A stretch of DNA of 49,290 nt from Neoechinorhynchus agilis (taxonomy: Eukaryota > Animalia > Acanthocephala). The stretch is from the NCBI GenBank assembly GCA_051530055.1, contig JBMGUZ010000015.1, positions 1 to 49,290 of the forward strand, in the 5' to 3' direction. The notes below the pieces were generated by a model, which made no database searches, was not told where the DNA came from, and was given only the letters and a program-made list of their open reading frames with translations. The position numbers and the translations under genes are program-made. Below, in pieces: positions 5,855 through 42,600 of the stretch (positions are counted from its first letter, which is position 1; every line of letters starts with the position of its first letter).

Positions 5855-5935
5855 TCATATCAGCCGCCATTTATTTTCTTCAACAATTTTTCAATCAGTC
5901 TTTTGTGCCGAATATTTAAAGGATTCACACGAACT

Positions 5936-6814: not shown

Positions 6815-6908
6815 TAAGGATGCTCCTTACTAAATCAAAATTCATAACTTTGTGCTCACAGTACATAGTGATCAAGAGTCTCTGACGGAGAGGTGTTGAA
6901 TCCGTTCG

Positions 6909-9828: not shown

Positions 9829-10319
9829 TTGTGCAAGTTAAAATGATTTGCAAAGGTGATCGCGTTTGTTGCCGTTGAATAGATGTTCGTTTAAGGAAGC
9901 GATCAGATCGTTAAATATTAGTAGATTATAGTAATGACCCGATGTAGAAAGTTGAGTTTAAGAACGTAGCTGTTTAGGTCGTTAGCACGATATGCCAAGA
10001 TATTAGCGATGTATACAATTCGGGTTCAATGGTATGATAAATAGGCTCCCACAGTGCGTTGCGCAACCAATCAGCGCGATTCACTACACTCAATAAATTT
10101 GTGCAACCAATCATATCGCGAGATCAAGAAGCCGACATTGATGTAATGCAGATAGGCATCACTAATCAAACAGATTAATTATAATTAAAGTACTTAAAAA
10201 TCCTTGATTTTCAAAGGCTTTAATGAACTAAACAAAGAACCCATTGCTTTTAATTACTTTACATTACGCGTTAACGCCCATGCTTTTGTTGTTACTTCCG
10301 AAACCAATTTCCTGACGGA

Positions 10320-10810
10320 TGCATTTCGGGTCCCAAAAAGCACTATTGTTGTTGACTTTAGGCCTCAATGTTTAACTACTTAGAAAGTAAGGTACTAAAC
10401 TCGTCGTTTCCAACAGATCAATGAAAATGGACGTTTGCATTATTTCTAAGAATATCAAGTTGTAGTCCGTAATCTGTTGATTAAAATAGAAAGCCAAGTG
10501 GTACTTTAGCATTCTGCATAAACTTTATAAGATAATCTCCCGTGCAGTATAGGAAGTGCAAATTGATGCATTTCGGGTCCCAAAAAGCACTATTGTTGTT
10601 GCCAATAGGCCTCAATGTTTAACTACTTAGCAAGTAAGTAAGCTACTAAATTCATCGTTTCCCATAGATCTATGAAAATGGATGTTTGCATTATTTCTAA
10701 GAATATCGAGTTGTAGTCCGTAAGCCGTGATTAAAATAGAAATCCAAGTGGTACTTTAGCGTCCTGCATAAACTTTATAAGATGATTTCCCGTGCAGTAT
10801 AGGAAGTGCA
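10320..10810 (+). repeat. SatA, two monomers heading module copy 1
   Basis: Runs from tgcatttcggg to ggaagtgca; shares diagnostic variants with 34790-35266. Confidence 0.95.
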
Positions 10811-11571: not shown

Positions 11572-14344
11572 ATGGCTGGGCGCTCCTTGGTTGAATGCAT
11601 TAATGCATTGGAGATTGACAATGAAGCTTTAATCACTAACAATTCAGACGATGTAAGTATCTTTTTTAGAAGGATAAATCCTTTTGCGCTGTGAGTAGAG
11701 TGCATTTATAAACGCAAATCGAACCGGGATTGTGTTTGCAATCGATGGTGTTCAATCGAGTTCAAATCATATTGCTCTTTCATTTGACGCCTGTTCAACT
11801 TGTGTCCAAAGCATTATCCACGATGACGATCTCGTCGCTGTGTTGATCTTCGGAACAATCGATGAGCGGTTGAAGCGGATTGCTAGGTTGTGGCACCAAG
11901 CAGATGATATCGGAGACATTTTAATGAGTAACGACTTGGTCGATGGTGTACGGATCGTCTGTGATCTGCAGCAACCCAGTGCAGATATTGTACTGAAACT
12001 TGAACGATGTGCCAAACTTGTTGAGGTTGAGAATTTCGATCAAGCGATAGCTAAGTGCCCATTGAATGAGGTGTTATGGGAATCCACGAGGTCTATGTGG
12101 ATTAATTTATCTTTTAATCTTTTGGTATTGACTGGTTCATTCTTTGCCAATATAAATAACTAGGATAAATTAAAAAAATTGATGTTTCGCCGCTCTATAA
12201 CAACAAATTTTAAAATGATTTTGCATTTACTATACCAATCAAAAAATTTAAATGGAGTTATTGTTTAGGTCTAAAGCCGGTAAATGATTATTTATTAAAG
12301 ACGTTTCGAACCTCGTCGAGAACAAACTGATGATGAACCCTACGAGGTTCGAAACGTTTTTAATCGAAATAATCATTTCCCGCAAGTGTAGACTTCTAAA
12401 CAATAATTCCACTAATCAATATACCCCGGTACCTCCTCGCACATATCGACAAAAATTTAAATACTTTCAACGTTTTAATTATGATTTCGGCACTTTGATT
12501 TTTTGCGAGATTATCCTAGATATTTAATTCTCTCTTTAAACCACCGTTGATTCTTGCTTAAATGTGTATTGTCAACACGTAGATAATGCCCTTTTACGCA
12601 AATGATGGATAGATATAAAATCCTGAAAATAATCCTTGGAATTACTCAGGTTATATGTTTTCTTGGTGAGATATTTCAAATGTCTTCTTTTTTATCATGT
12701 ATATTAATATTTTGAAAGTATTCTAATGCTTTTCAGTCTTAATGACCTTTTTATTTATTACATCCACAAGGACTTCATACAAGAATATTTTCGCGTAGTC
12801 CAAAGCTGGCTCGAGTTAACACTTCTCGGCGGCGCATCATTATATTTACCGATAATCCCGACCCTTATAATAACGACCTCGATGGGCGGCGACAAGTCTT
12901 ACAGCGAGCGAAGGATCTATTTGACTCACATATTTGTATTGATGTAATCCCAACATCAAGTGGATACTTTGACTACAAACAGTTCCATCAACACCTCATG
13001 ATGTTGAATGATGAACAGATCGATGCAATTCAGACGAATAACTCGCCAAATCAAGTTTGCTGTGACCGGGTGAAAGCCTTTAAGCGACGTGTTCAGCGTC
13101 CCTTCTGTCGAGTTATTTTTCGAATCCTTGCAGGAACTAAGAAGCCATGCGAAATTCCACTTGTGGCTTATTCTTTAAAACAAGGAGTTTCTGTATTAAT
13201 TTGGGTATTAATCCGGAACTTCTTGGATATCGCGACGACAAGCGGCACCTTTGAAAATGAATGTGCATAGGCGGACAAATATTCCGGTGGAGTCTTGTTC
13301 AGAAATCCATCAAAAGGGTCGCAATGAAGAAGACGATTTTGTCGTTTTACCTTCGGAAATCGCTTATTGTATTAACCTAGCAGGAAAAAAGGCGGTGTTT
13401 GTTCCTGAGGAATTAGCTTCCATTCAATGCCAGATTGTGAAACGAGTGTCTTACATTTTTTAATTGTCCTAAAATCTTGTTCTCGCTCTGCTTTAGTTTC
13501 TCAACATCAATGCACGAGTGCTTTTATAGTCGAAATATGGTATTGCCGGAAGTAAAACTAATAAAAACAAGATATCCGAACAAAAAATTATTTAATTTGC
13601 TAATTATAGTCAGAATGATCATAGTCGTGGTACATTCAGCCAATTACTGTTTAAACCTATTTTTCTTATCTGTAATTGTTCCTCGTGTGGGATCAACATA
13701 ATAGTGCTACTATCAAAAGACACTGGTTTTTTAATGAAACACTTGACAAACCTAGTCAAGCTTCGTTGACCCTTATTGGATTTAAACCGCGGTCAAAACT
13801 AGATTATAGTCTGTACTTAAAACCTGGATACTTTATAACTGGTTGTAGGGAAAGTCGTACATTCTTAACGGCTCTTCAGCGAAGATGCATTGAACGATCA
13901 ATATTCGCTGTCGCAAGAATGAAGCTTCGTATTAATTCCCCCTGTTACTTTGTGGCCCTTGTTCCATCCAGAAATGAACCAGGATTCATCGTGCAAATAT
14001 TGCCATTCGCAGACGATTTCAGAGATCTGACCGATGTTTTGAAAGACGTTGCGATTGATGTACCCAATGATGATGTATTAGATTTGATGGGTTCGGTTAT
14101 ACGTAAATTAAGTTTCACTTTTGACCCAAAGCAGTTTCCGAATCCCCACATTGAATGTGTTCAGCGAGCCATAAGATTGATTGCACTCGACAAAGAAGAT
14201 AATGACAGTTTTGAAGATCGGTCAATGCCGAAAATCGATGAGAAGGTGGCTGGCCCGATTCTTGATAAATTGAAGACCCTAAGTGCGCCTTCTAGGAAAC
14301 GAAAAGAAGATAGTGAACAATCAAGAGCAAAGAAGAAGAAATAA
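11572..14344 (+). CDS. XRCC6: Ku70 (XRCC6), 5 exons: 11572-11652, 11699-12090, 12799-13184, 13243-13447, 13756-14344 (last two junctions less certain)
   Basis: vWA-domain matches: IVFAID, LVAVLIFGT, PLNEVLWES, RRRIIIFTDNPDP, RAKDL. Core-domain matches: LTLIGFKP, PCYFVALVP, PGFIVQILPFADD, FPNPHI. Introns 1 and 2 are phase-compatible GT-AG. Confidence 0.9.
12327..12358 (+). ncRNA. Minimal type-I hammerhead ribozyme motif (Penelope-type) in Ku70 intron 2
   Basis: CTGATGA-T, stem II GAACC/GGTTC, GAAACGTT with palindromic ACGT stem III, 3-bp stem I AAA/TTT; embedded in an inverted repeat at 12282-12378. Confidence 0.7.
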
Positions 14345-17360: not shown

Positions 17361-18430
17361 ACATGTCTTTCACTCTTTCCTCATTAATTATTGTTGACTA
17401 ATAACTAGTATGCCACACACACCAGTAGTCGATCCACCACTAGTTTTTCTCTCAAATAAATCTATGTATATACTTTATAATACGTATTGGGCTCTTTAAA
17501 AACAAAAATTAGCCACGTTTTTCTTTTGTCACATAAAGAAACCTTACTAAAGGAATTTACGGTAAATAAATTTCAGAAAGAGAGAATTTCCAGCGATCAA
17601 TACTGTTTCTTAAAAATGTAGAACCTTTATTTTGCGTTTATCTGAACTTCTAAGATGTAATCAATAATTTTTCCTGCTCATTAGGGCGCATCGATTTAGC
17701 AAGACTTCTGAGATCTGGTAAGCCATCCAAATTGCAGTTAAAATTGCAAACTTAAAATGTTCTAACACATGGATAACGATTTTAAATTGCAGCAATCTTA
17801 GGCTCGTTGTAGACATTGTACGATTGTTTCTTTTTATAGTGTTTGCTTGGACTTTCCAAGACTTTATTCCGGATCACATCTTGTGCAAAAGTTGCGAAAA
17901 ATGATTGCCCTGCAAAATTAAAGACTAGATTAAGCAAAGACAAAACTACGAGTGTGATACGTAGAAAACTTTGAAGCCTAATTTATTGGTTTTGTAGGTA
18001 TTACCAACAATTGGTTAACACCTAGTTCGTGACGGACATATGTGCATTATGGAGATGTGGTGACCATATCCCCGGTTTTTTATGACATTTTATTAGGACA
18101 TTTCGGGAGGAAGCCTCGCCTTATCAGTCACCTGAAAAGTTCCCGGATTATAATCACCACAAAGAATTTTCTCTTGATGATACAGGCATTATATTGATCG
18201 CTATAAAATGTAGAACGATTGTTCATTTTCACGCCATAAAATAATGTGACTCGTAGCAAGAGTTTATACCAAAGGCAGGATACAAAATTCCCATCGTTCT
18301 TGTAACGCTAACATTGACGTGAGTTCATGAAGGTGGTAGACGAGCTCCCTCGTTCTCGTAGATTCCTTTAATGACGCATATTTCCCATAGCGTCTACACA
18401 TTCTCTTTTTATCATACACTACTTTCATAC

Positions 18431-19816
18431 ATGGCACCAAAGCCATTTCGATCAATCCATATAACTCATAAAAGCTCGGAGCGATCATCACCGGACATTA
18501 GGTTAATGTCTCCGTCAAGTCCACGCCATATCAGTCGAGTCCAGGAAAAAGAAGAGCTTCAAACCCTGAATGATCGCCTTGCCTCGTATATTGAGCGAGT
18601 CAATAGGTTGGAGGCGGACAACGCTAAACTGAAGGCAGAGATCTCAAATTACCAAGAACGGCATTCACAAGATGGTAGTCGAGTGAACACTATTTATGAT
18701 GCTGAAATCCAGGAACTTCGCAAAACATTAGATGAGGTTTCAAAAGACCGAGCTCGATTGGCAATTGAGGCGGGAAAACACTCAAGTGAAGCGGTCAATG
18801 CTGCAAATAAATTGACAAAATGCGAAAAACAACTGAAGCAGCTGGAAGTTAGGTTGAGGAAATTCGAGGGCGAGAACGCTGATTTGAAGGCTAAGCAAGG
18901 TCGAATTTTGCTAGACGTCGGTCGTAAAACAGACGAAGTTGTAAACTTAAAATCTAATCTAAATGATGCTGAACGTCAGCTTTCTAAAATTAGACGCGAA
19001 CTTGAAGATGAAACTATGCTTAGGGTTGATCTCGGAAATCAGGTCAACTCTCTCAAAGAGGATGCACAATTCAAAGCTCAAATACGCAAAAAGCAAATTG
19101 ATGAGCTTTCGCATCAACGAAGGACGGAAGTTAAGCGAGTAGATGAACGAATAAAGCAAGAATACGACGGTAAATTTATTGCGGAACTTAACAAGATTAG
19201 AACGGAAACTGAGGCCAAAATAAGCGAGATGCGCGACGAGGTTGAGCAGGGCTACAATCGAAGACTAGTGGAAGCACAAGAATCGAGCAAACGACAAGCA
19301 GCAAGTATGTTGAATCTAAAAGAAGATCTACAGGCATTAAGGCTAAAAGTCAATACACTCATTGCAGAACGTCACGATTTGCGCGGCAAATGCACTGAAA
19401 TGGAGGAAAAAATCAGAGTTTTGGAAGATGAAATCGGAGATCGACAGCGAAAATTCGACGAACAATTGGGGTTGAGAGATGCAGAAATCAGTGAGTTGAA
19501 GAAGAAATGCAATGAAATGAATGCAGTGTATCAGGATTTATTGAATATGAAAGTGAGTCTTGACCGCGAGATTTCAGAATACGCAAAGCTGATCGAATCA
19601 GGAGAAGAACTATTGCACTTAAAGTCAAGAGCTCGTTTTCAAGAGATATTTATCACGACCTCCGCAAAAAGGAAAAAAATCGATCAACCATTTGCTGACA
19701 AAAGAACTAAATCATTGAACGAGAGCACTGGAGTAAGCGGTTTGGTAAGTACAACAATTGAGATAATTGATGAAGGTAGTGATGCGGGAACGTTTGTAAA
19801 ACATTCCAATAAATGA
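18431..19816 (+). CDS. Lam: Nuclear lamin, intronless; full rod and NLS, but stops at the start of the Ig-like tail domain and has no CaaX (open from 18371; 18431 is the likely start)
   Basis: SPSSPRHISRVQEKEELQTLNDRLASYIERV, RVDLGNQVNSLKED, YQDLLNMKVSLDREISEYAKLIE. EKEE to YAKL spans 345 aa, the long lamin-type rod. NLS KRKKID; ends IEIIDEGSDAGTFVKHSNK*. Confidence 0.9.
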   Translation: MAPKPFRSIHITHKSSERSSPDIRLMSPSSPRHISRVQEKEELQTLNDRLASYIERVNRLEADNAKLKAEISNYQERHSQDGSRVNTIYDAEIQELRKTLDEVSKDRARLAIEAGKHSSEAVNAANKLTKCEKQLKQLEVRLRKFEGENADLKAKQGRILLDVGRKTDEVVNLKSNLNDAERQLSKIRRELEDETMLRVDLGNQVNSLKEDAQFKAQIRKKQIDELSHQRRTEVKRVDERIKQEYDGKFIAELNKIRTETEAKISEMRDEVEQGYNRRLVEAQESSKRQAASMLNLKEDLQALRLKVNTLIAERHDLRGKCTEMEEKIRVLEDEIGDRQRKFDEQLGLRDAEISELKKKCNEMNAVYQDLLNMKVSLDREISEYAKLIESGEELLHLKSRARFQEIFITTSAKRKKIDQPFADKRTKSLNESTGVSGLVSTTIEIIDEGSDAGTFVKHSNK

Positions 19817-23774: not shown

Positions 23775-26475
23775 CGTTTGAGCCGAGATGGGGTCCATTC
23801 GGGCACCGGATACCCAGCTCTATCGGTGTTTCGATTTTCTACTTCAAAGGTTCAACCCCGGCTCAATTGCTACGCCTGGTAAATCCGCGATGGAGTCCAA
23901 GGAACACCGAATCTCCCGATGGGTCGGTTTTATTTTTCGTCGTTATTTAAAGGATTCAATTCCGGCTGAAGTTCAACGCCGATTCGATCCGTGATGGGGT
24001 CCATTCGGGCATCGGATTCCCAGCTCTAATGGTGTTTCGGTTTTCCACTTCAAATGTCCATCCCCGGCTCAATTACTACGCCGGGTTAATCCGCGATGGA
24101 GTCAATGCGCACACCGAATCTCCCGATGGGTTGGTTTTATTTTTTGTCGTTATTTAAAAGATTTAATCGCGGCTCAAGTTCAACGCCGATTTGATCCGAG
24201 ATGGGGTCCATTCGGGCATCGGATCTCCAGCTCCATCGGTGTTTCGGTTTTCCATTTCAAATGTCCAACCCCGGCTCAATTGCTACGCCTGGTTAATCCG
24301 CGATGGAGTCGATGCGAACACCGAATCTCCCGATCGGTCGGTTTTATTTCTCGTTACTATTTAAAAGGTTTGATACCGGCTGAAGTTAAACGCCGTTTGA
24401 TCCGAGATGGAGTCCATTCGGGCACCGGATTCCCAGCTCTATCGGTGTTTCGGTTTTCCACTTCAAATGTCCAACCCCGGCTCAATTACTGCGCCTGGTT
24501 AATCCGTGATGGAGTCGATGCGAACACCGAATCTCCCGATCGGTCGGTTTTATTTTTCGTCGTTATTTAAAGGATTCAATTCCGGCTGAAGTTCAACGCC
24601 GATTCGATCCGAGATGGGGTCCATTCGGGCATCGGATCCCCAGCTCTAATGGTGTTTCGGTTTTCCACTTCAAATGTCCAACCCCGGCTCAATTACAACG
24701 CCGGGTTAATCCGCGATGGAGTCAATGCGCACACCGAATCTCCCGATGGGTCGGTTTTATTTTTCGTCGTTATTTAAAGGATTCAATTCCGGCTGAAGTT
24801 CAACGCCGATTTGATCCGAGATGGGGTCCATTCGGGCATCGGATCTCCAGCTCTATCGGTGTTTCGGTTTTCCATTTCAAATGTCCAACCCCGGCTCAAT
24901 TACTATGCCTGGTTAATCCGCGATGGAGTCGATGCGAACACCGAATCTCCCGATGGGTCGGTTTTATTTTTCGTCGTTATTTAAAGGATTCAATTCCGGC
25001 TGAAGTTCAACGCCGATTTGATCCGAGATGGGGTCCATTCGGGCATCGGATCTCCAGCTCCATCGGTGTTTCGGTTTTCCATTTCAAATGTCCAACCCCG
25101 GCTCAATTACTATGCCTGGTTAATCCGCGATGGAGTCGATGCGAACACCGAATCTCCCGATGGGTCGGTTTTATTTTTCGTCGTTATTTAAAGGATTCAA
25201 TTCCGGCTGAAGTTCAACGCCGATTTGATCCGAGATGGGGTCCATTCGGGCATCGGATCTACAGCTCTATCGGTGTTTCGGTTTTCCATTTCAAATGTCC
25301 AACCCCGGCTCAATTGCTACGCCTGGTTAATCCGCGATGGAGTCGATGCGAACACCGAATCTCCCGATCGGTCGGTTTTATTTCTCGTTACTATTTAAAA
25401 GGTTTGATACCGGCTGAAGTTAAACGCCGTTTGATCCGAGATGGAGTCCATTCGGGCACCGGATTCCCAGCTCTATCGGTGTTTCGGTTTTCCACTTCAA
25501 ATGTCCAACCCCGGCTCAATTACTACGCCTGGTTAATCCGTGATGGAGTCGATGCGAACACCGAATCTCCCGATCGGTCGGTTTTATTTTTCGTCGTTAT
25601 TTAAAGGATTCAATTCCGGCTGAAGTTCAACGCCGGTTTGATCCGAGATGGGGTCCATTCCGGCATCGGATCCCCAGCTCTAATGGTGTTTCGGTTTTCC
25701 ATTTCAAATGTCCATCCCCGGCTCAATTGCTACGCCTGGTTAATCCGCGATGGAGTCGATGCGAACACCGAATCTCCCGATCGGTCGGTTTTATTTCTCG
25801 TTACTATTTAAAAGGTTTGATACCGGCTGAAGTTAAACGCCGTTTGATCCGAGATGGAGTCCATTCGGGCACCGGATTCCCAGCTCTATCGGTGTTTCGG
25901 TTTTCCACTTCAAATGTCCAACCCCGGCTCAATTACTACGCCTGGTTAATCCGTGATGGAGTCGATGCGAACACCGAATCTCCCGATCGGTCGGTTTTAT
26001 TTTTCGTCGTTATTTAAAGGATTCAATTCCGGCTGAAGTTCAACGCCGGTTTGATCCGAGATGGGGTCCATTCCGGCATCGGATCCCCAGCTCTAATGGT
26101 GTTTCGGTTTTCCATTTCAAATGTCCATCCCCGGCTCAATTACTACGCCTGGTTAATCCGCGATGGAGTCCATGCGAACACCGAATCTCCCGATCCGTCG
26201 GTTTTATTTTTTGTCGTTATTTAAAAGATTCAATTCCGGCTGAAGTTCAACGCCGGTTTGATCCGAGATGGAGTCCATTCGGGCACCGGATCCCAGCTCT
26301 ATCGGTGTTTCGGTTTTCCACTTCAAATGTCCAACCCCGGCTCAATTACTACGCCTGGTTAATCCGCGATGGAGTCCATGCGAACACCGAATCTCCCGAT
26401 CGGTTGGTTTTATTTCTCGTTACTGTTTAAAAGTTCAATCTCGGCTGAAGTTCAACGACAGCTTGATCCGAGATG
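23775..26475 (+). repeat. SatB tandem array, ~206-207 bp monomer (two ~103-bp subunits), ~13 copies, local 413-bp dimers
   Basis: gatggggtccattc at 23787 and 23993; repeat-derived ORFs at 24280, 25314 and 25727 (offsets 1034 and 413). Confidence 0.97.
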
Positions 26476-26610: not shown

Positions 26611-26845
26611 TGTACTTCCAATTTTGAGATTATCTTATAAAGTTTTTGCAGAATGCTAAAGTACCACTTGGATTTCTAGTTTAATCAACAACTTACGGAC
26701 TACAACTCGATATTCTTAGAAATAATGCAAACGTCCATTTTCATTGATCTATTGGAAACGATGAGTTTAGTACCTTACTTTCTAAGTAGTTAAACATTGA
26801 GGCCTATGGGCCACAACAAAAGTGCTTTTTGGGACACGAAATGCA
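26611..26845 (-). repeat. SatA, single monomer heading module copy 2
   Basis: Begins tgtacttcc and ends gaaatgca; reverse orientation relative to 1-3026. Confidence 0.9.
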
Positions 26846-27050
26846 TCCGTCAGGAAATTGGTTTCGGAAGTAACAACAAAAGCATGGGCGTTAACGAGTA
26901 ATGTAAAGTAATTAAAAGTAATGGGTTCTTTGTTTAGTTCATTAAAGCCTTTGAAAATCAAGGATTTTTAAGTACTTTAATTATAATTAATCTGTTTGAT
27001 TAGTGATGCCTATCTGCATTACATCAATGTCGGCTTCTTGATCTCGCGAT

Positions 27051-27130
27051 ATGATTGGTTGCACAAATTTATTGAGTGTAGTGAATCGCGCTGATTGGTT
27101 GCGCAACGCACTGTGGGAGCCTATTTATCA
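27051..27130 (+). promoter_or_regulatory. Putative promoter of ORF540: two reverse CCAAT boxes plus a TATA-like tatttat
   Basis: TGATTGGTT at 27052 and 27092 (40 bp apart). Both ATTGG cores persist in the diverged upstream region of the relic copy near 41385-41425. Confidence 0.35.
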
Positions 27131-27336
27131 TACCATTGAACCCGAATTGTATACATCGCTAATATCTTGGCATATCGTACTAACGACCTAAACAGCAACG
27201 TTCTTAAACTCAACTTTCTACATCGGGTCATTACTATAATCTACTGATATTTAACGATCTGATCGCTTCCTTAAACGAACATCTATTCAACGGCAACAAA
27301 CGCGATCACCTTTGCAAATCATTTTAACTTGCACAA

Positions 27337-28959
27337 ATGTCGGACAAAAGACCCCAATTGAGAATCGATCCAAGAACTGGGGAATACTACATTCCTAGTT
27401 ACCTACGAAGCGATGGAACTTGGACAGAAAGGATCGTCTTCCGACCGGCCAGAATTAACAATGAGCAACAGCGCTCAAATAATACTATTAGCTCAAATGC
27501 CACTATAAATGAAAATTTAAATCATGACTCGCAGCAAAGATCAAACCGAACCAGGAGTGTTCCAAGACCGAATCAAATTAACTATGCAAATAGAAATTCT
27601 CGTGGATCGGCACCTCTCGCTCGCTATCAACCTGATCGAAGCAAAAATGAACTTTCGAGGAGCAACAGGGCAACATACTCGGTATTTCGGTCCGGACACC
27701 AAAACAAAAATTCTGGAAATAGTGGCACAAATGTAGAAGGTGCAAATTATCAAAATCGTGCCAGAAGCGTACAGAGAGCTCTTCAATTAAATTCGCCTCG
27801 CGGAAATGGGCACGAAGAAGAGTCCACTTCAAGATTTCAAACTGCGACACTTAATAGTGCTATAAACACAGCGGGACACTTCAACGACTCAGGGAGCCAA
27901 AGGGCTCAATTCGTCCAGAATCACCAAAATCCCACGCTACAACAACCACAAACAACAACCAATACTGCTATCGGCCAATCGATCAATTTCGGCGGCATAC
28001 AAAATGTTAACATGATTGGTGGCTTCCCGGCCCAACGATTCACCCAATTACCTTTTGGACAAACAATACAGCCAATGCCTCAACTTATCGCCAATATGCA
28101 GGCATTATCTTTGGGGAATCAAGTTGGACAAATTTATCCATTAAATCAACCCAATGCGGCTTATGGATTAGGGTGCGGTGCAACCGGTGTTAATCAATTT
28201 CCTTCGGGATTTCTGCTGCCACATCAACTACAAAGGATCCCAAATACATTTAATGCACCCAATCACACCTTTGAGGCGGATAAACCAATTGATGAGGGAG
28301 AAGCTTTAAAAAACCAGCCGAAAAAAGATCATCTTCTCTCGACTAAACTATATATCAACCGGAAAAACGGCGACCATGAGGAAAAGGTCCCAGTCATTGT
28401 GGAATTGAGCATCCGCGCCGACGACCAAACAAACAGTGAACTTCGAAAATATACAAAGGGCGGAATTAAGAATGCTTCTTTGCGGCCACGACATCGAGAT
28501 AATTCAAATATTCCCAGTTATTTATGGACTTATCTGCGTCCCGCTCAAAGGGATTACATAAAAAACAACAAAGTTGAAGGAGAGCCCGGCGATATAGAAG
28601 ATATCGAAGACGTTGTCTTTGCGTTGGAACGTGAGGAAGAGATGCCGCCGATTCCGGAAAAATTTACTATTGTTATCCAAAAGCCCGAAAAGGAGCAGAA
28701 AATTCCTGAATGGTTTACCTGCCACAACGACGAACAATGGCAGGATATCGGCGATGAAACCTTTATGGAAGAGTTTCTAATGGGCGATGATGATATGGAG
28801 ATCTTAAAATTGAATGCCGATACACTGAACACTAATAACAAAGACATGGCCTTTATTATGAAGTCATTGGCCAATAGTAAAGTGCACATTGAAGCTGTCA
28901 CCATTGTAAATGATAAAGAAGATAAAGACAGTGAAAATAATTCAGATGAACAGAACTGA
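27337..28959 (+). CDS. Module ORF540 copy 2
   Basis: 540 aa, 7 amino-acid differences from copy 1. Confidence 0.8.
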   Translation: MSDKRPQLRIDPRTGEYYIPSYLRSDGTWTERIVFRPARINNEQQRSNNTISSNATINENLNHDSQQRSNRTRSVPRPNQINYANRNSRGSAPLARYQPDRSKNELSRSNRATYSVFRSGHQNKNSGNSGTNVEGANYQNRARSVQRALQLNSPRGNGHEEESTSRFQTATLNSAINTAGHFNDSGSQRAQFVQNHQNPTLQQPQTTTNTAIGQSINFGGIQNVNMIGGFPAQRFTQLPFGQTIQPMPQLIANMQALSLGNQVGQIYPLNQPNAAYGLGCGATGVNQFPSGFLLPHQLQRIPNTFNAPNHTFEADKPIDEGEALKNQPKKDHLLSTKLYINRKNGDHEEKVPVIVELSIRADDQTNSELRKYTKGGIKNASLRPRHRDNSNIPSYLWTYLRPAQRDYIKNNKVEGEPGDIEDIEDVVFALEREEEMPPIPEKFTIVIQKPEKEQKIPEWFTCHNDEQWQDIGDETFMEEFLMGDDDMEILKLNADTLNTNNKDMAFIMKSLANSKVHIEAVTIVNDKEDKDSENNSDEQN

Positions 28960-29995
28960 AGAAATACGGAGGCTAAATAAAGAAGAAACGATTAACTCGG
29001 CAAGAAAATAAACCAGGATGCTCAAAATGGGAATATCGAAATTTGCGAAAATGAAAAGTTTATAAAAAATGAAGAGTGATCGAACAAACTGTCACTGTTT
29101 TTTGATGTGCTTAAATAAAAAAATTAAAATCAAGTGTTTCAAATGGGCATTGATTTTCACTTGTCGCCTATTAAGCAAATAATTTTAGGGGTATTTGTGG
29201 GCACTTAAGATTTAAAAAATGATTTATTATTCTGGAGCGTTAAAAATTTATACAAGTTTGTTTTGTTTAGGATTTAGCGAAAAAATAGGAATATTTATTG
29301 AATAAAATGGATTAAAATAAATATTTACTTACAGATATTGGGAAGACTAAAAAAGGTTAAAAATACATAGCTTCAAATTTAAAAACTCTCGAGTGTTATT
29401 TCATAAGCAATTGTGATCACCGCATAAATCAAAGGATGAACGAATTTGTGTTTCGGAAAGCCTTTCATTTCCAATTTTTTTTCAAAACATAATTATGTTA
29501 AATGGAATTTAAAGAGAGAGAACAAGTAACATTTTCTTCACATCGGGGATGTATATTTTTTGAAGCTTCTGGTCAGTTATTTTTTGAAACATATCATTGG
29601 CGAAATAACAGCTATCAAAACTGTCAGGATTCATAGTTATCCACCAGCAACTTTTTGTGAGCCTGAAATCAAATTACAGAGTAACAAATCATTCCATGAC
29701 AAAGAATGTTTTCAACATATTCTAAATGAAAAAATGTCTTCAAATTAAAAAGAGTAAAGACAAAAACCTTTTACCTTGGTGCAACAAATAAGACATTGAA
29801 CGGGATTATTTTTAAAGTACTTTGAGTAATTGCTGAATTGCGAAGTGGACATTTGTCTTATGATTTTGGTCAATTCCTGGTATTATTGTTGTCCAGCATT
29901 AAAATCCTGAAAAAATTAATATGAGTTCTATAGAAAACACAATAATAAATATTTTTAAAGCATCATAAGACGAATAGAAGCAAACTAATTTTAAG

Positions 29996-30304
29996 TTGCT
30001 GATATTATTTTTGTCAGCTATTGTTCAGAAACAAAACAAAGAAAACGGGGAACTTGACAATCTTATTAAGGACGTAGCAGCCAAAATTAAAGTAACGCCT
30101 GGCATGGAAAAAGGTAAAAATACCGATGATAAATCTCATACAAAGTCCGGTGTTCACTCTAAGTTTGATGTTGAGATTGAAGAGCAGTCAAAAAGTTCGA
30201 TAAAAACGAAATCTAAACTTAGTTTTGAAGACGGGAGCTGTAAAGAAATTTCAAGAAAGAGGCTGTCATCTTCCATTCGAGGTAAGGAGAAAACAAAAAT
30301 TTAG
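29996..30304 (+). CDS. Module ORF102 copy 2 (probable exon 29996-30281)
   Basis: aattttaag| acceptor at 29995; phase-1 donor g|gtaagg at 30282. Confidence 0.5.
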   Translation: MLILFLSAIVQKQNKENGELDNLIKDVAAKIKVTPGMEKGKNTDDKSHTKSGVHSKFDVEIEEQSKSSIKTKSKLSFEDGSCKEISRKRLSSSIRGKEKTKI

Positions 30305-30398
30305 CGAACGGATTCAACACCTCTCCGTCAGAGGCTTTTGATCACTATGTACTGTGAGCACAAAGTTATGAATTTTGATTTAGTAAGGAGCATCCTTA

Positions 30399-31277
30399 AT
30401 GAAATTCGAAATTCTTCAATTCGGATTGATAGATGTTCTTGGAGAGATGTTCGACAACAAAGATAATGCTCCACTCAACAAACTCTTAAACCAAGTTGGT
30501 TTGAAGATCAAGGAGGCTTTTGATCAAAAACGATTTAAAGAACGACGAGCGACGAAACCCAAATTAAATAAAACAAAAGAATTAGAACCCGAAATATCAG
30601 GTACTGGTTCTAGTGATAGGAATTCTAATGCAATTTCGGACAAAGAAACAGAATCGCCGAAGAGTATCAATAGCGATAAAAAAGGAGAAATGGGACTTCG
30701 TAACGTCGAAAACGTTCACAGTCAACAGATTTCAGAATCCAAACAATTGATGCCGCCTTCTCTTTTAACTAAGGAGATTAAATTATTAAAGTCTTTGTTG
30801 GATTCTCAATACGCAACGAAAATCTTCGAACTGGTGGACGATGTACTTTCCGAGATTTCGGAATTAGCGATGACCGCGGATCAAATCAAAGATTCCGATC
30901 TCATAGCCATTCTCCATAACATGGCCAGCAACGAGGAAAACGAACCGCTAATCGACATTATCGATGAAATCGGAAAAAAGATCGTGGGAATCTTTAATCG
31001 GCAACCTACAGAAATGTCCAATACTACGACGGAAAATAAATCAGGATCACGATTGAAAGACAAATCACCGAATGAATCCACTTCAAAAAGAAAATCATCA
31101 AAGCCTTCAGTTGATATGAACTTGAGTACCAAGGAACTCTGTGATCGTTTAAAAAGCATCTTGGACGAGAAGTTCACTGTGCGGAACCACGCGATGCCAA
31201 AGCGGATACTCAGCGCGATGATTAAACGTGAAATAGCGTTGAGTGAAATTCGGAACTACAATTTGCATCCTAACTAA
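30399..31277 (+). CDS. Module ORF292 copy 2 (probable exon from 30388)
   Basis: Intron 30282-30387 would join ORF102 in frame (SSIR-G-ASLMKFEIL); duplicated helical repeat. Confidence 0.65.
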   Translation: MKFEILQFGLIDVLGEMFDNKDNAPLNKLLNQVGLKIKEAFDQKRFKERRATKPKLNKTKELEPEISGTGSSDRNSNAISDKETESPKSINSDKKGEMGLRNVENVHSQQISESKQLMPPSLLTKEIKLLKSLLDSQYATKIFELVDDVLSEISELAMTADQIKDSDLIAILHNMASNEENEPLIDIIDEIGKKIVGIFNRQPTEMSNTTTENKSGSRLKDKSPNESTSKRKSSKPSVDMNLSTKELCDRLKSILDEKFTVRNHAMPKRILSAMIKREIALSEIRNYNLHPN

Positions 31278-31358
31278 AGTTCGTGTGAATCCTTTAAATA
31301 TTCGGCACAAAAGACTGATTGAAAAATTGTTGAAGAAAATAAATGGCGGCTGATATGA

Positions 31359-31745
31359 ATGAAAAAATTTAAATCTCGAAAACGAATAGTGGTCCTGAGA
31401 AATAAATCTGAAGGAAAAATGTTGGCGACGGAAACAACGGAGCAGCAGAAAACGAGAGCAGAATTCATGGGGAAATTTGAAGGAAAGACAAATATCAGAT
31501 CTAACGAGGATAAAAACGAAGCTAAGACGGACATTTCTGATTTCACTTCCGAGGGTTCAACCGGTTTCGAAACCGATTATTCGAACATCAATAACAACTT
31601 TATTTATAAAAGTACGATCTATGTTCAACTGGAATTTTCGTTACCGATGGTTTTAAAAATAACGTGGAGTGTACAGCATCGAGTTGGCTACCCAACATTT
31701 AATGTAGTTGAAATCCAGCAGGGAAACCTAGAGCGCCCCTTTTAG
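31359..31745 (+). CDS. Module ORF128 copy 2
   Basis: Open in both copies; no domain recognised. Confidence 0.35.
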   Translation: MKKFKSRKRIVVLRNKSEGKMLATETTEQQKTRAEFMGKFEGKTNIRSNEDKNEAKTDISDFTSEGSTGFETDYSNINNNFIYKSTIYVQLEFSLPMVLKITWSVQHRVGYPTFNVVEIQQGNLERPF

Positions 31746-32750
31746 ACTCATAAAGTCTTGATTAAAATCGTTAATAATTTTCTCGCTGTACATTGCATTC
31801 CCCCCGCAATCTATCTTTCTCTCAAAGAATATGGCATTGCGCCCGCTGTTCCTGGATTTGAGTGAAATACACAGGCTGCAGGTCGAATTCGCTTATTTTT
31901 GTCTTAATATTATTTGATAGGATGTTTTGTTGTGGAAACATTAAAGGTAAGAAAGTTTCACTTAACCACTTTCATCTCTTGAGGGTTTAGGTGACTCTTT
32001 CAACTTTACTGCAAATTCGCTTACGAGAAACAATCCCTTCCCCAACGTTATCCCCTATCTGCCCCAACAACCGGCTTAAGAATCAACTCTTTTCTATTGG
32101 CGAAATGCCCTTAAATTTTTCTATCATATGAATAAATCAGGCTCCAATATCTACTTTTTAGTTGTCCACCGTCACGCGTAGTTTCCTATTTTGCTCCATC
32201 AAATTGTAAATGTCTCTCCAAGTTTTCCAATTTTATATCATTATCCCCTTCCACCTTCCATGGTACGACTAACCGACTCTCTTTGAGTCCTGTTCGAGAA
32301 AGTGTACGGCTAATCCTGAAATTGACGAAGATGATCATTGGAACGCTGATTGATATAAAATTCGTTTCAAAAATTCAATTAACATTACAGGTAATCGGAA
32401 TCTTCTTGAATGATTCATTATTGAATTTCTAAACATACTCCACAATACCGTGTTTTTTTAACACATTTAGCGATTGTATCTCCAAAGCTAGAATGAGACT
32501 ACTAAATCTTCTTATGAATTTTAACTCTTCCCTGTTTCTGAGAGCTCATAAAAGATGCTAAACTTACAGGTCATGACATGCTGAAATACGTTTGATTACT
32601 TAATCTAGCGATTCAGCCGTTTTATTCCCGGTTACTCTTCCTTCCATACATACCGCGAGGTCCGCCCAGGAAGATGGTCTCAATCTACGAACGGCAATCT
32701 TTCACATCGGCGAAACCCCGATCGAGAATTCATCGCAATCCACTTTTCAG

Positions 32751-33622
32751 CTCCTGGCTCCTTTCCTCTTCATCTTGGTGATTGATTGGGTAATGAGATG
32801 GGCACTATCGAATGATGAAGATGGATTTCTTCGGTTGAGGAAAAGAGGTCGCAGGTATCCTGAGATACACGCCTCCTACATGGCATATGCCGACGACATC
32901 ATGTTGATGTCCTCAACAGTCGAAGGAGCTCAACGCATGCTAAATAGACTGTGCGAGAGGGCGAATATGATTGGTATGACCATCAACTCGAAAAAGACGA
33001 TTCCGCATGTCGCGCATACAGTCCCTGGCGAAGGGCCGAATGGCGTTGAGCAATTAAAACAGATAGAGCGGTATGTCTATCTGGGAGCTGTCGTTCCTGA
33101 GGTGAGTGCGGATGTCAGCCGATGGAGAGCTATAGCTTGGAGAGCAATGGGGCAACTTAAGCCACTGTTTGACAGCGAGTCTTTGCCAGACGAACTCCGT
33201 TCCAAGCTGTTCAGGACTCTAATTGAGAGCATTCTCTACTACAATGCAGAGACCTGGACACTGTCACCAACGGCGACGATGAAGTTGGACCAAAATCATT
33301 CATCTCTCTTACGTGCGGCGTTCAAGCTCAGATGGTCAGTAAAGTGACCAACAAAGCACTGTATAAGGGAGCCGGAGTCCAACCGCCCAGTAAATATTTG
33401 CGCCACAGACGACTGCAGTTCACGGGCAATATAATTCGGTCCGAGGCATCTTGCCCACAGGTCGTGCAAGAGTTCCTTTTCTGGAAGCCAACGACATTGT
33501 ATCGTAAAGGCAAAGGGAACTGTCGTGCATACGATGACCTGATTTTAAGAGACGCGAATTGCCCGCATAACAGGACTGCTGTCGTGTATTTTAGATCCCT
33601 TGCGGAGTCTAATTCTATTTGA
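32751..33622 (+). pseudogene. 5'-truncated RTE-like RT 3' part (module copy 2)
   Basis: LAPFLFILVIDW, YADD, YVYLG, YNAETWTL; same frameshift as copy 1. Confidence 0.85.
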
Positions 33623-33640
33623 CGGGCTTATACCTACGGT

Positions 33641-34180
33641 GCAACGTAAATGGCATTAGAGAATTCACCATTGCTGGTATCTATCGCCCTCCTGCCTCTC
33701 GTCCTGAGTCCTCTTTACATAAACTGGTTTCCATGATGGAACTCATAAACTCTGCAAATTTACACCATTTCTAAATTGCAGGGGACTTCAATGATCTATT
33801 TCTTCCTCTACCATTCTCCGAGTTGCGTCAACTTATTAATTTCCCAACTCGTCTTGACGCTCACCTCGACAAAGTGTTCACAAATATCAACGCCCACTAT
33901 TCCGCCCTTAAACTCCCTCCCCCACACGCGAACTCTGATCACTCTTTTGCCTTTATCACTCCCTCAACCCCACCTCAGCGTACTAAATCTCCCCGTTTAC
34001 CCGTCTGGAATAAACGTGAACATCACACCCAAAATTTTATAAAATTGTTTAACTCTAACATCCACACGTCCCACTGATAAAACAAATGACCCTTCCTTGG
34101 CAACGTCCTCCCTAACCTTAATCATAGAAAATTCCCTAACCACGACAATTCCAAAGAAATTCAATAGAATCTCCAACCTT
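33641..34180 (+). pseudogene. CR1/L2-type AP endonuclease fragment (module copy 2)
   Basis: IAGIYRPP...*IAGDFND...QLINFPTRLDAHLDKVFTN...NSDH. Confidence 0.75.
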
Positions 34181-35266
34181 GACGAGTTCAGTACCTAACT
34201 TGCTTGCCAAGTAGTTAAACATTGAGGCCTATAGGCAACAACAATAGTGCTTTTTGGGACACGAAATGCATCAATATTCATTTCCTATACTGCCCAGGAG
34301 ATTATCTTATAAAGTTTATGCAGAATGCCAAAGTGCCACTTGGATTTCTATTTTAATCAACAGCTTACGGACTACAACTCGATATTCTTGGAAATAACGC
34401 AAAGGTCCATTTTCATTGATCTATAGGAAACGACGAGTTTAGTACCTAACTTACTTGATAAGTAGTTAAATATTGAGGCCTATTGGCAACAACAATAGTG
34501 CTTTTTTGGACACGAAATGCATCAATATGCACTTCCTATACTGCACGGGAGATTATCTTATAAAGTTTATGCAGAATGGTAAAGTACCACTTGGATTTCT
34601 ATTTTAATCAACAACTTACGGACTACAACTCTATATTCTTAGAAATAATGCAAAGGTCCATTTTCATTGATCTATGGGAAACGACGAGTTTGTTACCTTA
34701 CTTACTTGCTAAGTAGTTAAACATTGAGGCCTATAGGCAACAACAGTGCTTTTTGGGACACGAAATGCATCAATATTCACTTCCTATACTGCACGGGAAT
34801 TTATCGTATAAAGTTTATGCAGGACGCTAAAGTACCACTTGGATTTCTATTTTAATCACGGCTTACGGACTACAACTCGATATTCTTAGAAATAATGCAA
34901 ACATCCATTTTCATAGATCTATGGGAAACGATGAATTTAGTAGCTTACTTACTTGCTAAGTAGTTAAACATTGAGGCCTATTGGCAACAACAATAGTGCT
35001 TTTTGGGACCCGAAATGCATCAATTTGCACTTCCTATACTGCACGGGAGATTATCTTATAAAGTTTATGCAGAATGCTAAAGTACCACTTGGCTTTCTAT
35101 TTTAATCAACAGATTACGGACTACAACTTGATATTCTTAGAAATAATGCAAACGTCCATTTTCATTGATCTGTTGGAAACGACGAGTTTAGTACCTTACT
35201 TTCTAAGTAGTTAAACATTGAGGCCTAAAGTCAACAACAATAGTGCTTTTTGGGACCCGAAATGCA
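34181..35266 (-). repeat. SatA, partial monomer plus ~4 monomers between module copies 2 and 3
   Basis: Begins mid-monomer at gacgagtt and ends gaaatgca immediately before the module start tccgtcaggaaattgg. Confidence 0.95.
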
Positions 35267-37808
35267 TCCGTCAGGAAATTGGTTTCGGAAGTAACAACAA
35301 AAGCATGGGCGTTAACGCGTAATGTAAAGTAATTAAAAGTAATGGGTTCTTTGTTTAGTTCATTAAAGCCTTTGAAAATCAAGGATTTTTAAGTACTTTA
35401 ATTATAATTAATCTGTTTGATTAGTGATGCCTATCTGCATTACATCAATGTCGGCTTCTTGATCTCGCGATATGATTGGTTGCACAAATTTATTGAGTGT
35501 AGTGAATCGCGCTGATTGGTTGCGCAACGCACTGTGGGAGCCTATTTATCATACCATTGAACCCGAATTGTATACATCGCTAATATCTTGGCATATCGTG
35601 CTAACGACCTAAACAGCTACGTTCTTAAACTCAACTTTCTACATCGGGTCATTACTATAATCTACTAATATTTAACGATCTGATCGCTTCCTTAAACGAA
35701 CATCTATTCAACGGCAACAAACGCGATCACCATTGCAAATCATTTTATCTTGCACAAATGTCGGACAAAAGAACCCAATTGAGAATCGATCCAAGAACTG
35801 GGGAATACTACATTCCTAGTTACCTACGAAGCGATGGAACTTGGACAGAAAGGATCGTCTTCCGACCGGCCAGAATTAACAATGAGCAACAGCGCTCAAA
35901 TAATACTATTAGCTCAAATGCCACTATAAATGAAAATTTAAATCATGACTCGCAGCAAAGATCAAACCGAACCAGGAGTGTTCCAAGACCGAATCAAATT
36001 AACTATGCAAATAGAAATTCTCGTGGATCGGCACCTCTCGCTCGCTATCAACCTGATCGAAGCAAAAATGAACTTTCGAGGAGCAACAGTGCAACATACT
36101 CGGTATTTCGGTCCGGACACCAAAACAAAAATTCTGGAAATAGTGGCACAAATGTAGAAGGTGCAAATTATCAAAATCGTGCCAGAAGCGTACAGAGAGC
36201 TCTTCAAATAAATTCGCCTCGCGGAAATGGGCACGAAGAAGAGTCCACTTCAAGATTTCAAACTGCGACACTTAATAGTGCTATAAACACAGCGGGACAC
36301 TTCAACGACTCAGGGAGCCATAGGGCTCAATTCGTCCAGAATCACCAAAATCCCACGCTACAACAACCACAAACAACAACCAATACTACTATCGGCCAAT
36401 CGATCAATTTCGGCGGCATACAAAATGTTAACATGATTGGTGGCTTCCCGGCCCAACGATTCACCCAATTACCTTTTGGACAAACAATACAGCCAATGCC
36501 TCAACTTATCGCCAATATGCAGGCATTATCTTTGGGGAATCAAGTTGGACTAATTTATCCATTAAATCAACCCAATGCGGCTTATGGATTAGGGTGCGGT
36601 GCAACCGGTGTTAATCAATTTCCTTCGGGATTTCTGCTGCCACATCAACTACAAAGGATCCCAAATACATTTAATGCACCCAATCACACCTCTGAGGCGG
36701 ATAAACCAATTGATGAGGGAGAAGCTTTAAAAATCCAGCCGAAAAAAGATCATCTTCTCTCGACTAAACTATATATCAACCGGAAAAACGGCGACCATGA
36801 GGAAAAGGTCCCAGTCATTGTGGAATTGAGCATCCGCGCCGACGACCAAACAAACAGTGGACTTCGAAAATGCACAAAGGGCGGAATTAAGAATTCTTCT
36901 TTGCGGCCACGACATCGAGATAATTCAAATATTCCCAGTTATTTATGGACTTATCTGCGTCCCGCTCAAAGGGATTACATAAAAAACAACAAAGTTGAAG
37001 GAGAGCCCGGCGATATAGAAGATATCGAAGACGTTGTCTTTGCGTTGGAACGTGAGGAAGAGATGCCGCCGATTCCGGAAAAATTTACTATTGTTATCCA
37101 AAAGCCCGAAAAGGAACAGAAAATTCCTGAATGGTTTGCCTGCCACAACGACGAACAATGGCAGGATATCGGCGATGAAACTTTTATGGAAGAGTTTCTA
37201 ATGGGCGATGATGATATGGAGATCCTAAAATTGAATGCCGATACACTGAACACTAATAACAAAGACATGGCCTTTATTATGAAGTCATTGGCCAATAGTA
37301 AAGTGCACATTGAAGCTGTCACCATTGTAAATGATAAAGAAGATAAAGACAGTGAAAATAATTCAGATGAACAGAACTGAAGAAATACGGAGGCTAAATA
37401 AAGAAGAAACGATTAACTCGGCAGGAAAATAAACCAGGATGCTCAAAATGGGAATATCGAAATTTGCGAAAAAAAATGAAGAGTGATCGAACAAACTTTC
37501 GCTGTTTTTTGATGTGCTTAAATAAAAAAATTAAAATCAAGTGTTTCAAATGGGCATTGATTTTCACTTGTCGCCTATTAAGCAAATAATTTTAGGGGTA
37601 TTTGTAGGCACTTAAGATTTAAAAAATGATTTATTATTCTGGAGCGTTAAAAATTTATACAAGTTTGTTTTGTTTAGTATTTAGCGAAAAAATAGGAATA
37701 TTTATTGAATAAAATGGATTCAAATAAATATTTACTTACAGATATTGGGAAGACTAAAAAAGGTTAAAAATACATAGCTTCAAATTTAAAACACCTCGAG
37801 TGTTATTT
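35267..37808 (+). mobile_element. Module U copy 3, 3'-truncated (tandem to copy 2, period 8421 bp)
   Basis: Matches the first ~2.5 kb of copy 2; homology ends at ctcgagtgttattt (~37808). Confidence 0.85.
35758..37380 (+). CDS. Module ORF540 copy 3
   Basis: Intact 540 aa with several private substitutions. Confidence 0.78.
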   Translation: MSDKRTQLRIDPRTGEYYIPSYLRSDGTWTERIVFRPARINNEQQRSNNTISSNATINENLNHDSQQRSNRTRSVPRPNQINYANRNSRGSAPLARYQPDRSKNELSRSNSATYSVFRSGHQNKNSGNSGTNVEGANYQNRARSVQRALQINSPRGNGHEEESTSRFQTATLNSAINTAGHFNDSGSHRAQFVQNHQNPTLQQPQTTTNTTIGQSINFGGIQNVNMIGGFPAQRFTQLPFGQTIQPMPQLIANMQALSLGNQVGLIYPLNQPNAAYGLGCGATGVNQFPSGFLLPHQLQRIPNTFNAPNHTSEADKPIDEGEALKIQPKKDHLLSTKLYINRKNGDHEEKVPVIVELSIRADDQTNSGLRKCTKGGIKNSSLRPRHRDNSNIPSYLWTYLRPAQRDYIKNNKVEGEPGDIEDIEDVVFALEREEEMPPIPEKFTIVIQKPEKEQKIPEWFACHNDEQWQDIGDETFMEEFLMGDDDMEILKLNADTLNTNNKDMAFIMKSLANSKVHIEAVTIVNDKEDKDSENNSDEQN

Positions 37809-41663: not shown

Positions 41664-42600
41664 ATGTCGGAAAAAAGACCCAATTGAGAATCGATCCAAG
41701 AACTGGGGAATACTACATTCCTAGTTACCTACGAAGCGATGGAACTTGGACAGAAAGGATCGTCTTCCGACCGGCCAGAATTAACAATGAGCAACAGCGC
41801 TCAAATAATACTATAAGCTCAAATGCCACTATAAATGAAAATTTAAATCATGACTCGCAGCAAAGATCAAACCGAACCAGGAGTGTTCCAAGACCGAATC
41901 AAATTAACTATGCAAATAGAAATTCTCGTGGATCTTCACGTATCAATCGCCATAAACCAAAGAAGAAACAGTGCTACACTACACAGTTCGGTCAGAAATT
42001 CACCAATGAATAATAGAACTAATAATGGAATGCTTCAAATCGTGCAAGAAATGTACCGAGGGTTCATCAAATGCGCAGCGAAATATAAATATCCAGCTAT
42101 AAGCATGAGCTCAGTTAACTATTTGAAACAGCGCCGCCAAATAAATTTGAAGCCACAGCAGGACACCACAGCGACTCGGCAGATCAAAGGATTCTATTCG
42201 TCCAAAGTCGTGAAAATCCCACGAAACGACAAATACAAACAACCAATAATGCTATCTGCCAGGTTATAAATTTCCGCAGTATGTAAAGTGCTAACCTGAC
42301 CGGTAGCTTTCCAGCACGCGAATGGTTAAACTACCTCTTGGACAAGCAATGCAGCAAATGCCTCAACTAATCGTTAATATGCAGGAAATATCGTTCGAGG
42401 AATCAGGTTGGAAAAATTTATCAAGGAAATCAAATCCATGCTGAAGAGGATTTGGGTGACCGAGAATCTCGGGTAATCAATTTCTTCGCGATTTGAGATG
42501 TAACATAAACCACAAAGGAGCCAAAGCGAATCGAACGCACCGAATATTAACCGTGGATAGGAAAAATAAATTGATAAAAGGTAACTGATAAAAATTATCA
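41664..42600 (+). pseudogene. ORF540 pseudogene (copy 4): young 5' part, old diverged 3' part
   Basis: 1-bp deletion at codon 6 (agacccaattg versus agaccccaattg). Near-identical to copies 1-3 up to ~41935, then a collinear but heavily diverged match with stops. Confidence 0.8.

Follow-up and report, generated by a model that had tools for sequence, protein, structure and literature searches.

A putative PYM-derived N-terminal head on ORF540, an amplified and lineage-restricted gene of the acanthocephalan Neoechinorhynchus agilis

To our knowledge, PYM (WIBG) is known as a single architecture, with one small N-terminal Mago-Y14-binding domain carried by one short protein per genome. In Drosophila, the 35-residue N-terminal domain binds Mago-Y14 at the interface of the heterodimer and, when over-expressed alone, disassembles exon junction complexes (EJCs) (PMC4072592). 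Binding of PYM and binding of eIF4A3 to Mago-Y14 are mutually exclusive (PMC7355637). A key PYM-contact residue is Mago E117, mutation of which in the human protein abolishes PYM1 binding (bioRxiv 10.1101/2025.03.13.643037). Here we describe ORF540, an open reading frame (ORF) of 540 codons found in several copies on contig JBMGUZ010000015.1 (hereafter C15) of Neoechinorhynchus agilis, whose product begins with a head of about 37 residues that is quite probably derived from the PYM domain. The window analyzed is the entire 49,290-bp contig, which belongs to a 46.2 Mb assembly of 102 contigs. Heads of the same kind are found in at least 4 gene families of this genome, amounting to about 15 intact genes, and two of the families have been amplified to about six copies each. 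All gene models used are single open frames throughout that need no splicing.

A PYM-like motif at residues 14-29 of ORF540 (TGEYYIPSYLRSDGTW) had been recognized in a sequence-only reading of this DNA and was found where it had been described. Similar to PYM (PF09282; Drosophila PYM bound to Mago-Y14 in structure 1RK8, chain C, hereafter 1rk8_C), ORF540 carries this domain at its extreme N-terminus, the matched stretch of Drosophila PYM being residues 7-36, and both proteins share the strand-turn core [YF]-I-P-[AS]-x-x-R-x-D-G-T-W. Compared with the pattern [YF]-I-P-[AS]-x-x-R-P-D-G-T-W, the first strand and turn of ORF540 read Y-I-P-S-Y-L-R-S-D-G-T-W, the replacement of P by S being the sole change. 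Residues 18-30 of ORF540 (YIPSYLRSDGTWT) and residues 12-24 of 1rk8_C (FIPATKRPDGTWR) are identical at 7 of 13 positions, corresponding to 7/30 identities across 30 ungapped residues. Mago-bind (PF09282) is the only Pfam family matched by the ORF540 N-terminus, with 13.2 bits (E 0.09) for residues 1-50 and 14.3 bits (E 0.039) for residues 11-40. A profile of the ORF540 and ORF574 heads (A4) matches 1rk8_C at E 0.49, while one built from five heads, namely those of ORF540, its paralogue P0002, ORF574, P0248 and P0249 (A7), does so at E 0.035 over 26 residues; the rows ranked above 1rk8_C in the five-family search are designed Kelch repeats, with scores summed from many tiny turn matches.

The second half of the PYM domain, consisting of the basic run R-K-x-R-R-V-K followed by G-Y-V-P, is missing in ORF540, which instead continues with T-E-R-I-V-F-R-P-A-R-I-N and few basic residues. 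The absence of these elements and of the PYM C-terminal region, as well as their replacement by an N/Q/S-rich region (residues 46-330, 25% N+Q) and an acidic tail (residues 411-540, 28% D+E, net charge -24), bears out the earlier description. At 540 residues, ORF540 is also far from the roughly 150-230 residues of PYM, and it differs further in its N/Q-rich, probably disordered body and in being multicopy. The spacing after the W is one residue shorter in the ORF540, P0249 and ORF574 heads than in PYM and P0248. As ORF540 fails the curated Pfam score, has only part of the domain, the second half being missing, and differs in architecture, it was placed outside PF09282 and is not classed as a PYM; it is best described as an apparent chimeric derivative bearing the first half of the PYM domain. 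On direct evidence alone, a relation to PYM is possible. Taken by itself, the motif match is borderline, at the edge of chance, and it would be more than chance only by way of the bridging paralogue P0248.

P0248 (ACOME3_006532) is a single-copy gene encoding a 148-residue hypothetical protein. A genome-wide search with the A4 profile identified it at E 1.5e-5, together with the related genes P0249 and P0250 at E 1e-4. BLASTP of ORF540 against P0248 yields 14 identities over 27 residues (52%) starting from Met1 (E 2e-8), and hhalign of A4 against a profile of the P0248 and P0249 heads (A8) returns a probability of 97.9% and an E value of 3.6e-13, with columns 1-37 aligned to columns 1-37. All five heads align from Met1 without gaps. 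P0248 has the same M-x-x-[KR]-R-P...EYYIPS start as ORF540, in register from Met1. Unlike ORF540, P0248 continues beyond the shared start with R-P-D-G and then R-V-R-R-D-Y-V-P, that is, with the second half of the PYM domain, and it is PYM-sized and single-copy; it has R-R where both PYM and ORF540 have T-W. A phmmer search of P0248 against the Protein Data Bank (PDB; 177,635 distinct sequences) gave 1rk8_C as sole match (E 0.037), in an alignment of 30 ungapped residues that includes I-P, RPDG, RV and YVP, and the A8 profile likewise ranked 1rk8_C first (E 0.032). An ESM Atlas feature search with P0248 returned only PF09282 Mago-bind clusters, with a score of 0.87 and 193 of 256 features in common. 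Judged from these comparisons, P0248 is very probably a diverged PYM orthologue or the closest PYM paralogue. The ORF540 head is homologous to that of P0248 and would hence, with good though somewhat lesser confidence, be PYM-derived.

The PYM-like N-terminus proposed for ORF540 from sequence is thus supported by transitive homology through P0248 but not by direct match, which lies below the Pfam cut-off and covers half a domain. The same reading had suggested looking for a separate canonical PYM gene; P0248, more canonical than ORF540, is such a gene. A six-frame search of the genome with PF09282 gave two noise matches containing stops and no PYM, because P0248 receives no Pfam match. The replacement of T-W by R-R makes P0248 invisible to Pfam. 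When the genome was searched with a DNA pattern for P-D-G-T-W, only ORF574 copies and two unrelated ORFs were found, one of which we take, from the motif alone, to be USP-like.

Based on the selection acting on it, ORF540 is a real, lineage-restricted protein-coding gene. P0002 (ACOME3_000175) is an intact diverged paralogue of 496 residues, and the ratio of non-synonymous to synonymous substitution rates (dN/dS) between it and ORF540 is 0.28 at a synonymous divergence (dS) of 0.73. By region, the ratio is 0.19 for residues 1-45, 0.31 for the N/Q-rich middle and 0.26 for the acidic C-terminal third, and it lies at 0.2-0.4 in most pairs of young ORF540 copies. The comparison of copies that had been recommended on first reading thus reveals purifying selection. 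No relatives outside N. agilis were found when 1.84 billion cluster representatives were searched exhaustively with hmmsearch (4 matches, all N. agilis), and a word-indexed protein search returned N. agilis proteins only. Full-length ORF540 has no Pfam family and no usable ESM Atlas match, and its body alone has no Pfam, PDB or Atlas match. AlphaFold2 models the full-length protein confidently at residues 4-38 only (predicted local distance difference test, pLDDT, 63-81), with the remainder below 50; the C-terminal region of this low-confidence model has no fold match above Z 3.

Two further families carry an ORF540-type module at Met1 and, like ORF540, are duplicated, lineage-restricted and endowed with low-complexity bodies, which are however unrelated to that of ORF540. 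The ORF574 family (ACOME3_005225/005236), with six intact copies of 574 residues, has a body composed of a C-x-x-C cluster followed by two R/N/Q/D-rich repeats of about 200 residues. Its copies are flanked by inverted copies of a 165-residue ORF. P0249 and P0250 (ACOME3_001127/001130) are two genes of 671 residues each whose heads keep the W, followed by a basic run and D-Y-P-P, and whose bodies combine three C-x-x-C motifs with a tandem array of about ten acidic repeats, each of about 28 residues. ORF540, ORF574 and P0249 retain the ancestral W lost by P0248, and this, together with their common shorter spacing after the W, suggests that all three go back to a single early duplicate. Across the five module-bearing gene types, the upstream 300 nt are no more similar to each other than shuffled sequences are. 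In P0002, ORF574, P0248 and P0249, but not in ORF540, the ATG is preceded at a distance of 0-2 nt by a pyrimidine-rich stretch with a terminal AG, which resembles an acceptor site for 3' splicing or trans-splicing.

Both presumed partners are encoded in the genome. Mago (ACOME3_001612, 100% identical) and Y14 (ACOME3_001445, 100% identical) are intact single-exon genes and, apart from the Mago changes discussed below, well conserved; the genes inspected in this reduced genome are single-exon. Y14 was located by a scan for RNA-recognition motifs, while a DNA pattern for V-D-W-C-F did not recover it from the genome. N. agilis Mago also differs at the conserved positions V66, S67, K71, G73 and Q125 (own numbering, five above human). 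Btz/CASC3 (PF09405) and UPF3 (PF03467) were undetected in six-frame searches of the genome, which suggests a reduced toolkit for the EJC and nonsense-mediated decay (NMD) or an extreme divergence of these two proteins. The N. agilis genome has been reported at 96% k-mer completeness with 47% of metazoan Benchmarking Universal Single-Copy Orthologues (BUSCOs), and the supplement of that report contains no EJC or PYM terms (PMC12690905). Complex prediction of Mago, residues 70-168 of Y14 and residues 1-50 of ORF540 gave interface scores (ipSAE) of 0.44, 0.16 and 0.00, which, with a median below the mark and no controls, speak neither for nor against binding.

We hypothesize that the head of ORF540 is derived from the domain with which the PYM N-terminus binds Mago-Y14, that the first strand and R-x-D-G-T-W turn of this domain were retained and its basic run and G-Y-V-P lost, and that the head was fused to about 285 N/Q-rich, probably disordered residues and an acidic tail of about 200 residues. 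This head would dock on Mago-Y14 at or near the PYM site and exclude eIF4A3 as in the known systems, so that the remainder of the protein, disordered and acidic, would be tethered to Mago-Y14, whether free or within the EJC, and ORF540 would serve as an adaptor or compete with PYM or eIF4A3. We give this explanation as a whole about even chances, and the retention of Mago-Y14 binding by the head, considered separately, slightly less than that. We infer that ORF540 may affect the EJC or NMD, for example as a decoy. A broader proposal, in which the PYM head is a portable N-terminal module and the expanded set of Mago-Y14 adaptors or competitors would rewire the remaining EJC, alongside the E117T change in Mago and the undetectable Btz and UPF3, is tentative and rather unlikely.

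A number of observations weigh against this explanation, some of them concerning descent from PYM and others concerning binding. With regard to descent, the search against the Mago-bind model that had been proposed on first reading left ORF540 at 13.2-14.3 bits, below the Pfam cut-off of 20.6 bits, with a match covering only profile positions 1-15 of 27. Pfam hmmscan found no match on the heads of P0002, ORF574, P0248 and P0249, and the R of R-x-DGTW is not retained in the P0002 and ORF574 heads. When the ORF540 head was searched as a single sequence against the PDB, the top rank went to an unrelated beta-propeller hairpin (E 0.06), and PYM was not among the matches. No single sequence step to PYM reaches conventional significance (direct E 0.039-0.49; P0248 to 1rk8_C E 0.037), and the link between P0248 and PYM consists of E values near 0.03 and a language-model score below 0.9. 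Residues 7-38, the confident part of the full-length AlphaFold2 model, can be superposed on 1rk8_C (30 of 33 residues, root-mean-square deviation 2.0 Å, 23% identity, Z 2.4); however, searches of VIA wide, Foldseek PDB and Atlas with a model of the N-terminus only missed 1rk8_C and gave non-specific hairpins only, and the modelled match is thus to be taken as noise-level for so small a domain. On a rival reading, the head would be a generic, lineage-specific mini-domain of two hairpins with DP-x-TG and DGTW turns that resembles PYM by chance, the likeness of P0248 being coincidental. Unrelated hairpins indeed reach equal or better sub-threshold scores (beta-propeller lyase, E 0.06; collagen adhesin, E 0.24; designed Kelch repeats; chignolin-like turns), all PYM E values lie between 0.03 and 0.5, Pfam is silent on four of the five heads and fold searches with small domains are non-specific. 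Chance is nevertheless an improbable explanation, given that the P0248, A8 and A7 queries each rank 1rk8_C as the top natural single-stretch match among 177,635 sequences, that an independent language-model search of P0248 leads to PF09282 clusters only, that the module occupies the extreme N-terminus as in PYM and that P0248 has the size of PYM and aligns over all 30 residues of the domain, YVP included.

With regard to binding, the position of Mago E117 is occupied by T in N. agilis and Pomphorhynchus laevis, whereas of 76 other Magos 73 have an acidic residue (E or D) there, and several conserved charged helix residues of N. agilis Mago differ as well, so that the canonical PYM interface is altered in this lineage. 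Moreover, the basic/GYVP half of the PYM domain is replaced in ORF540 by a family-specific pattern. Together with the undetected Btz and UPF3, these features would fit either a co-evolved, remodelled interface or a lost one. The head may be PYM-derived and yet no longer bind Mago-Y14, the module being kept for another partner or role and ORF540 acting outside the EJC. We regard such a loss as a serious possibility, albeit one held with well under even confidence. It agrees with the pattern T-x-x-[IL]-V-x-x-P-x-x-[IN]-N, which takes the place of the second half and is conserved between the ORF540 and ORF574 heads but unlike PYM, with E117T and the other surface changes of Mago, and with a reduced EJC/NMD machinery in a genome showing 47% of BUSCOs at 96% k-mer completeness (PMC12690905). 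It is less easily reconciled with selection on the strand-turn Y-I-P-S...D-G-T-W (dN/dS 0.19), a core that no other part of the PYM domain surpasses in conservation, with the otherwise good conservation of Mago and Y14, and with searches that point to no alternative partner. A very different origin, as an ORF1- or gag-like gene of a retrotransposon, would account for the copy number, the 251-bp monomers upstream of ORF540 copies and the nearby reverse transcriptase fragment (RVT_1, 27 bits) with an endonuclease-like piece downstream. We consider it highly unlikely, as that fragment, situated about 3.8 kb away and in a different frame, is a short, truncated 3' piece lacking any continuous ORF2, the copies were propagated as segments of 8.4-8.7 kb and not as insertions, P0002 and the other module families sit in unrelated contexts, and the head is homologous to a cellular PYM-like gene. 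The reading of ORF540 as ORF1 of a non-LTR (long terminal repeat) element was rejected, the unit holding no intact endonuclease/reverse transcriptase ORF2 but only a truncated RVT_1 and scattered pieces. It is similarly far-fetched that ORF540 is non-functional and open merely through the youth of its copies: at 97-100% identity these have had little time to decay, but dN/dS is 0.28 across a dS of 0.73 to the intact 496-residue paralogue and 0.2-0.4 for most pairs of young copies, relatives that have really decayed contain many stops, and the frame was kept despite a 21-bp deletion at the stop.

ORF540 was amplified via segmental duplication, both tandem and inverted, its copies having spread as 8.4-8.7 kb segments and not as discrete insertions. 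The window contains three intact copies that are 98-99% identical to each other. As noted on first reading, all three keep the full 540 residues, including copy 1, which lost 21 bp at the stop and ends in TAA in place of TGA. The two inverted arms are 97.1% identical across 8.66 kb, and a partial tandem unit adjoins a 251-bp satellite (Table 1). Genome-wide, six intact 540-residue copies were identified, three on C15, two on contig C1 and one on contig C55, along with one frameshifted copy, truncated copies and several decayed relics; identity among copies is 97-100%, and the relics carry many stops and match residues 412-524. The arrays on C15 and C55 resemble the one at C1:1.71-1.74 Mb, which likewise has units spaced by about 8.6 kb and one inverted copy, at a dS of 0.03-0.04. 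Because dS to the C1 copies is this low, the copies on the two small contigs may be alternative haplotypes of the C1 array rather than extra loci. Among described systems, this arrangement is reminiscent of the ampliconic gene families of mammalian sex chromosomes, which form palindromes and tandem arrays: ORF540 is a young multicopy gene in inverted arms of about 8.6 kb (97%, with sub-blocks of 99%) and also lies in tandem units amid satellites and retroelement debris. It differs from these families in that there is no evidence for sex linkage, germline expression or gene conversion between arms.

Other features of the window are listed in Table 1. ORF292, rich in lysine, serine and glutamate, is present in both amplicon arms at 99% identity and matches no Pfam family; the amplified unit may thereby comprise a second gene. 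The truncated non-LTR debris within the amplicon, which is unlinked to ORF540, comprises the 3' portion of an RVT_1 domain and an endonuclease-like piece. The spacer between the arms contains an intronless intermediate-filament ORF and a fragment of a Ku70/80 gene.

Table 1. Location of ORF540 copies, protein regions, amplicon elements and related genes. Positions without a contig prefix refer to the 49,290-bp window.
Feature	Position	Strand	Remarks
ORF540 copy 2 (carries the head described here)	27337-28959	+	single exon, 540 aa, TGA stop included
N-terminal module, aa 1-37, putative PYM-derived beta-hairpin head	27337-27447	+	pLDDT 63-89; hhalign 97.9% to P0248/P0249 N-termini; dN/dS 0.19 (aa 1-45)
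Motif aa 14-29, TGEYYIPSYLRSDGTW	27376-27423	+	resembles first strand and R-x-D-G-T-W turn of PYM domain; PF09282 13.2-14.3 bits; 1rk8_C alignment
N/Q/S/T/G/P-rich region, aa 46-330, probably disordered	27472-28326	+	25% N+Q, 55% NQSTGP; pLDDT 20-30
Acidic C-terminal region, aa 331-540	28327-28956	+	conserved in P0002 and decayed relics; dN/dS 0.26
ORF540 copy 3	35758-37380	+	direct repeat of copy 2, intact
ORF540 copy 1	8206-9828	-	inverted; ends in TAA, 21 bp being deleted immediately behind codon 540
Decayed ORF540-like fragment	41672-42472	+	no start Met, 8 stops within match, motif still readable
Amplicon right arm	26626-35268	+	ORF540, ORF292, long interspersed nuclear element (LINE) debris, 251-bp satellite
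Amplicon left arm (inverted)	1934-10539	-	pairs with 26626-35268
Partial second tandem unit	35047-37808	+	direct repeat of 26626-29401, 97.9%; unit spacing ~8.4 kb
ORF292, right arm	30399-31277	+	
ORF292, left arm	5936-6814	-	
Non-LTR debris, right arm	32775-33347 and 33619-34077	+	RVT_1 fragment at 32775-33347
Non-LTR debris, left arm	3864-4436	-	mirrors right arm
Ku70/80 fragment	13676-14344	+	222 aa, beta-barrel and C-arm, begins mid-domain
Intermediate-filament ORF	18371-19816	+	481 aa, Pfam Filament 1e-50
251-bp satellite	35-3026, 10318-10810, 34181-35268		12, 2 and 4 copies; flanks ORF540 units
207-bp satellite	23777-26475		13 copies
163-bp satellite	42933-49290		39 copies, 95% identical; reaches contig end
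Intact ORF540 copies outside the window	C1:1720187, C1:1736652, C55:2392		
P0002	C1:1105642		
P0248	G000:C2:8116871-8117317 (L077:372-815)		
P0249, P0250	G000:C1:5249561, G000:C1:5259410 (L078:260-2272)	-	
ORF574, six copies	C2:2594071, 2621488, 2634490, 2815077, 2859991, 3903891 (L075:3078-4802)		
Mago	G000:C1:6905451-6905909 (L033:1474-1932)		
Y14	L063:1249-1812		

We know of no earlier case in which a PYM head recurs at Met1 on four bodies unrelated to each other, with amplification of two, and found nothing of the kind in the literature searched. In N. agilis, PYM-type heads appear to sit on four unrelated bodies, two of which are present in about six copies. The genome of this parasite measures 46 Mb, and about half of the conserved metazoan genes are lost from it. 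Should the heads have retained Mago-Y14 binding, they would represent a natural experiment in which EJC disassembly or adaptor factors were multiplied and diversified, as well as a case of co-evolution by way of E117T in Mago. If they have not, new genes would have exapted a short binding domain as the module with which they start. In both cases, a probable acanthocephalan PYM orthologue invisible to Pfam, P0248, has been identified.

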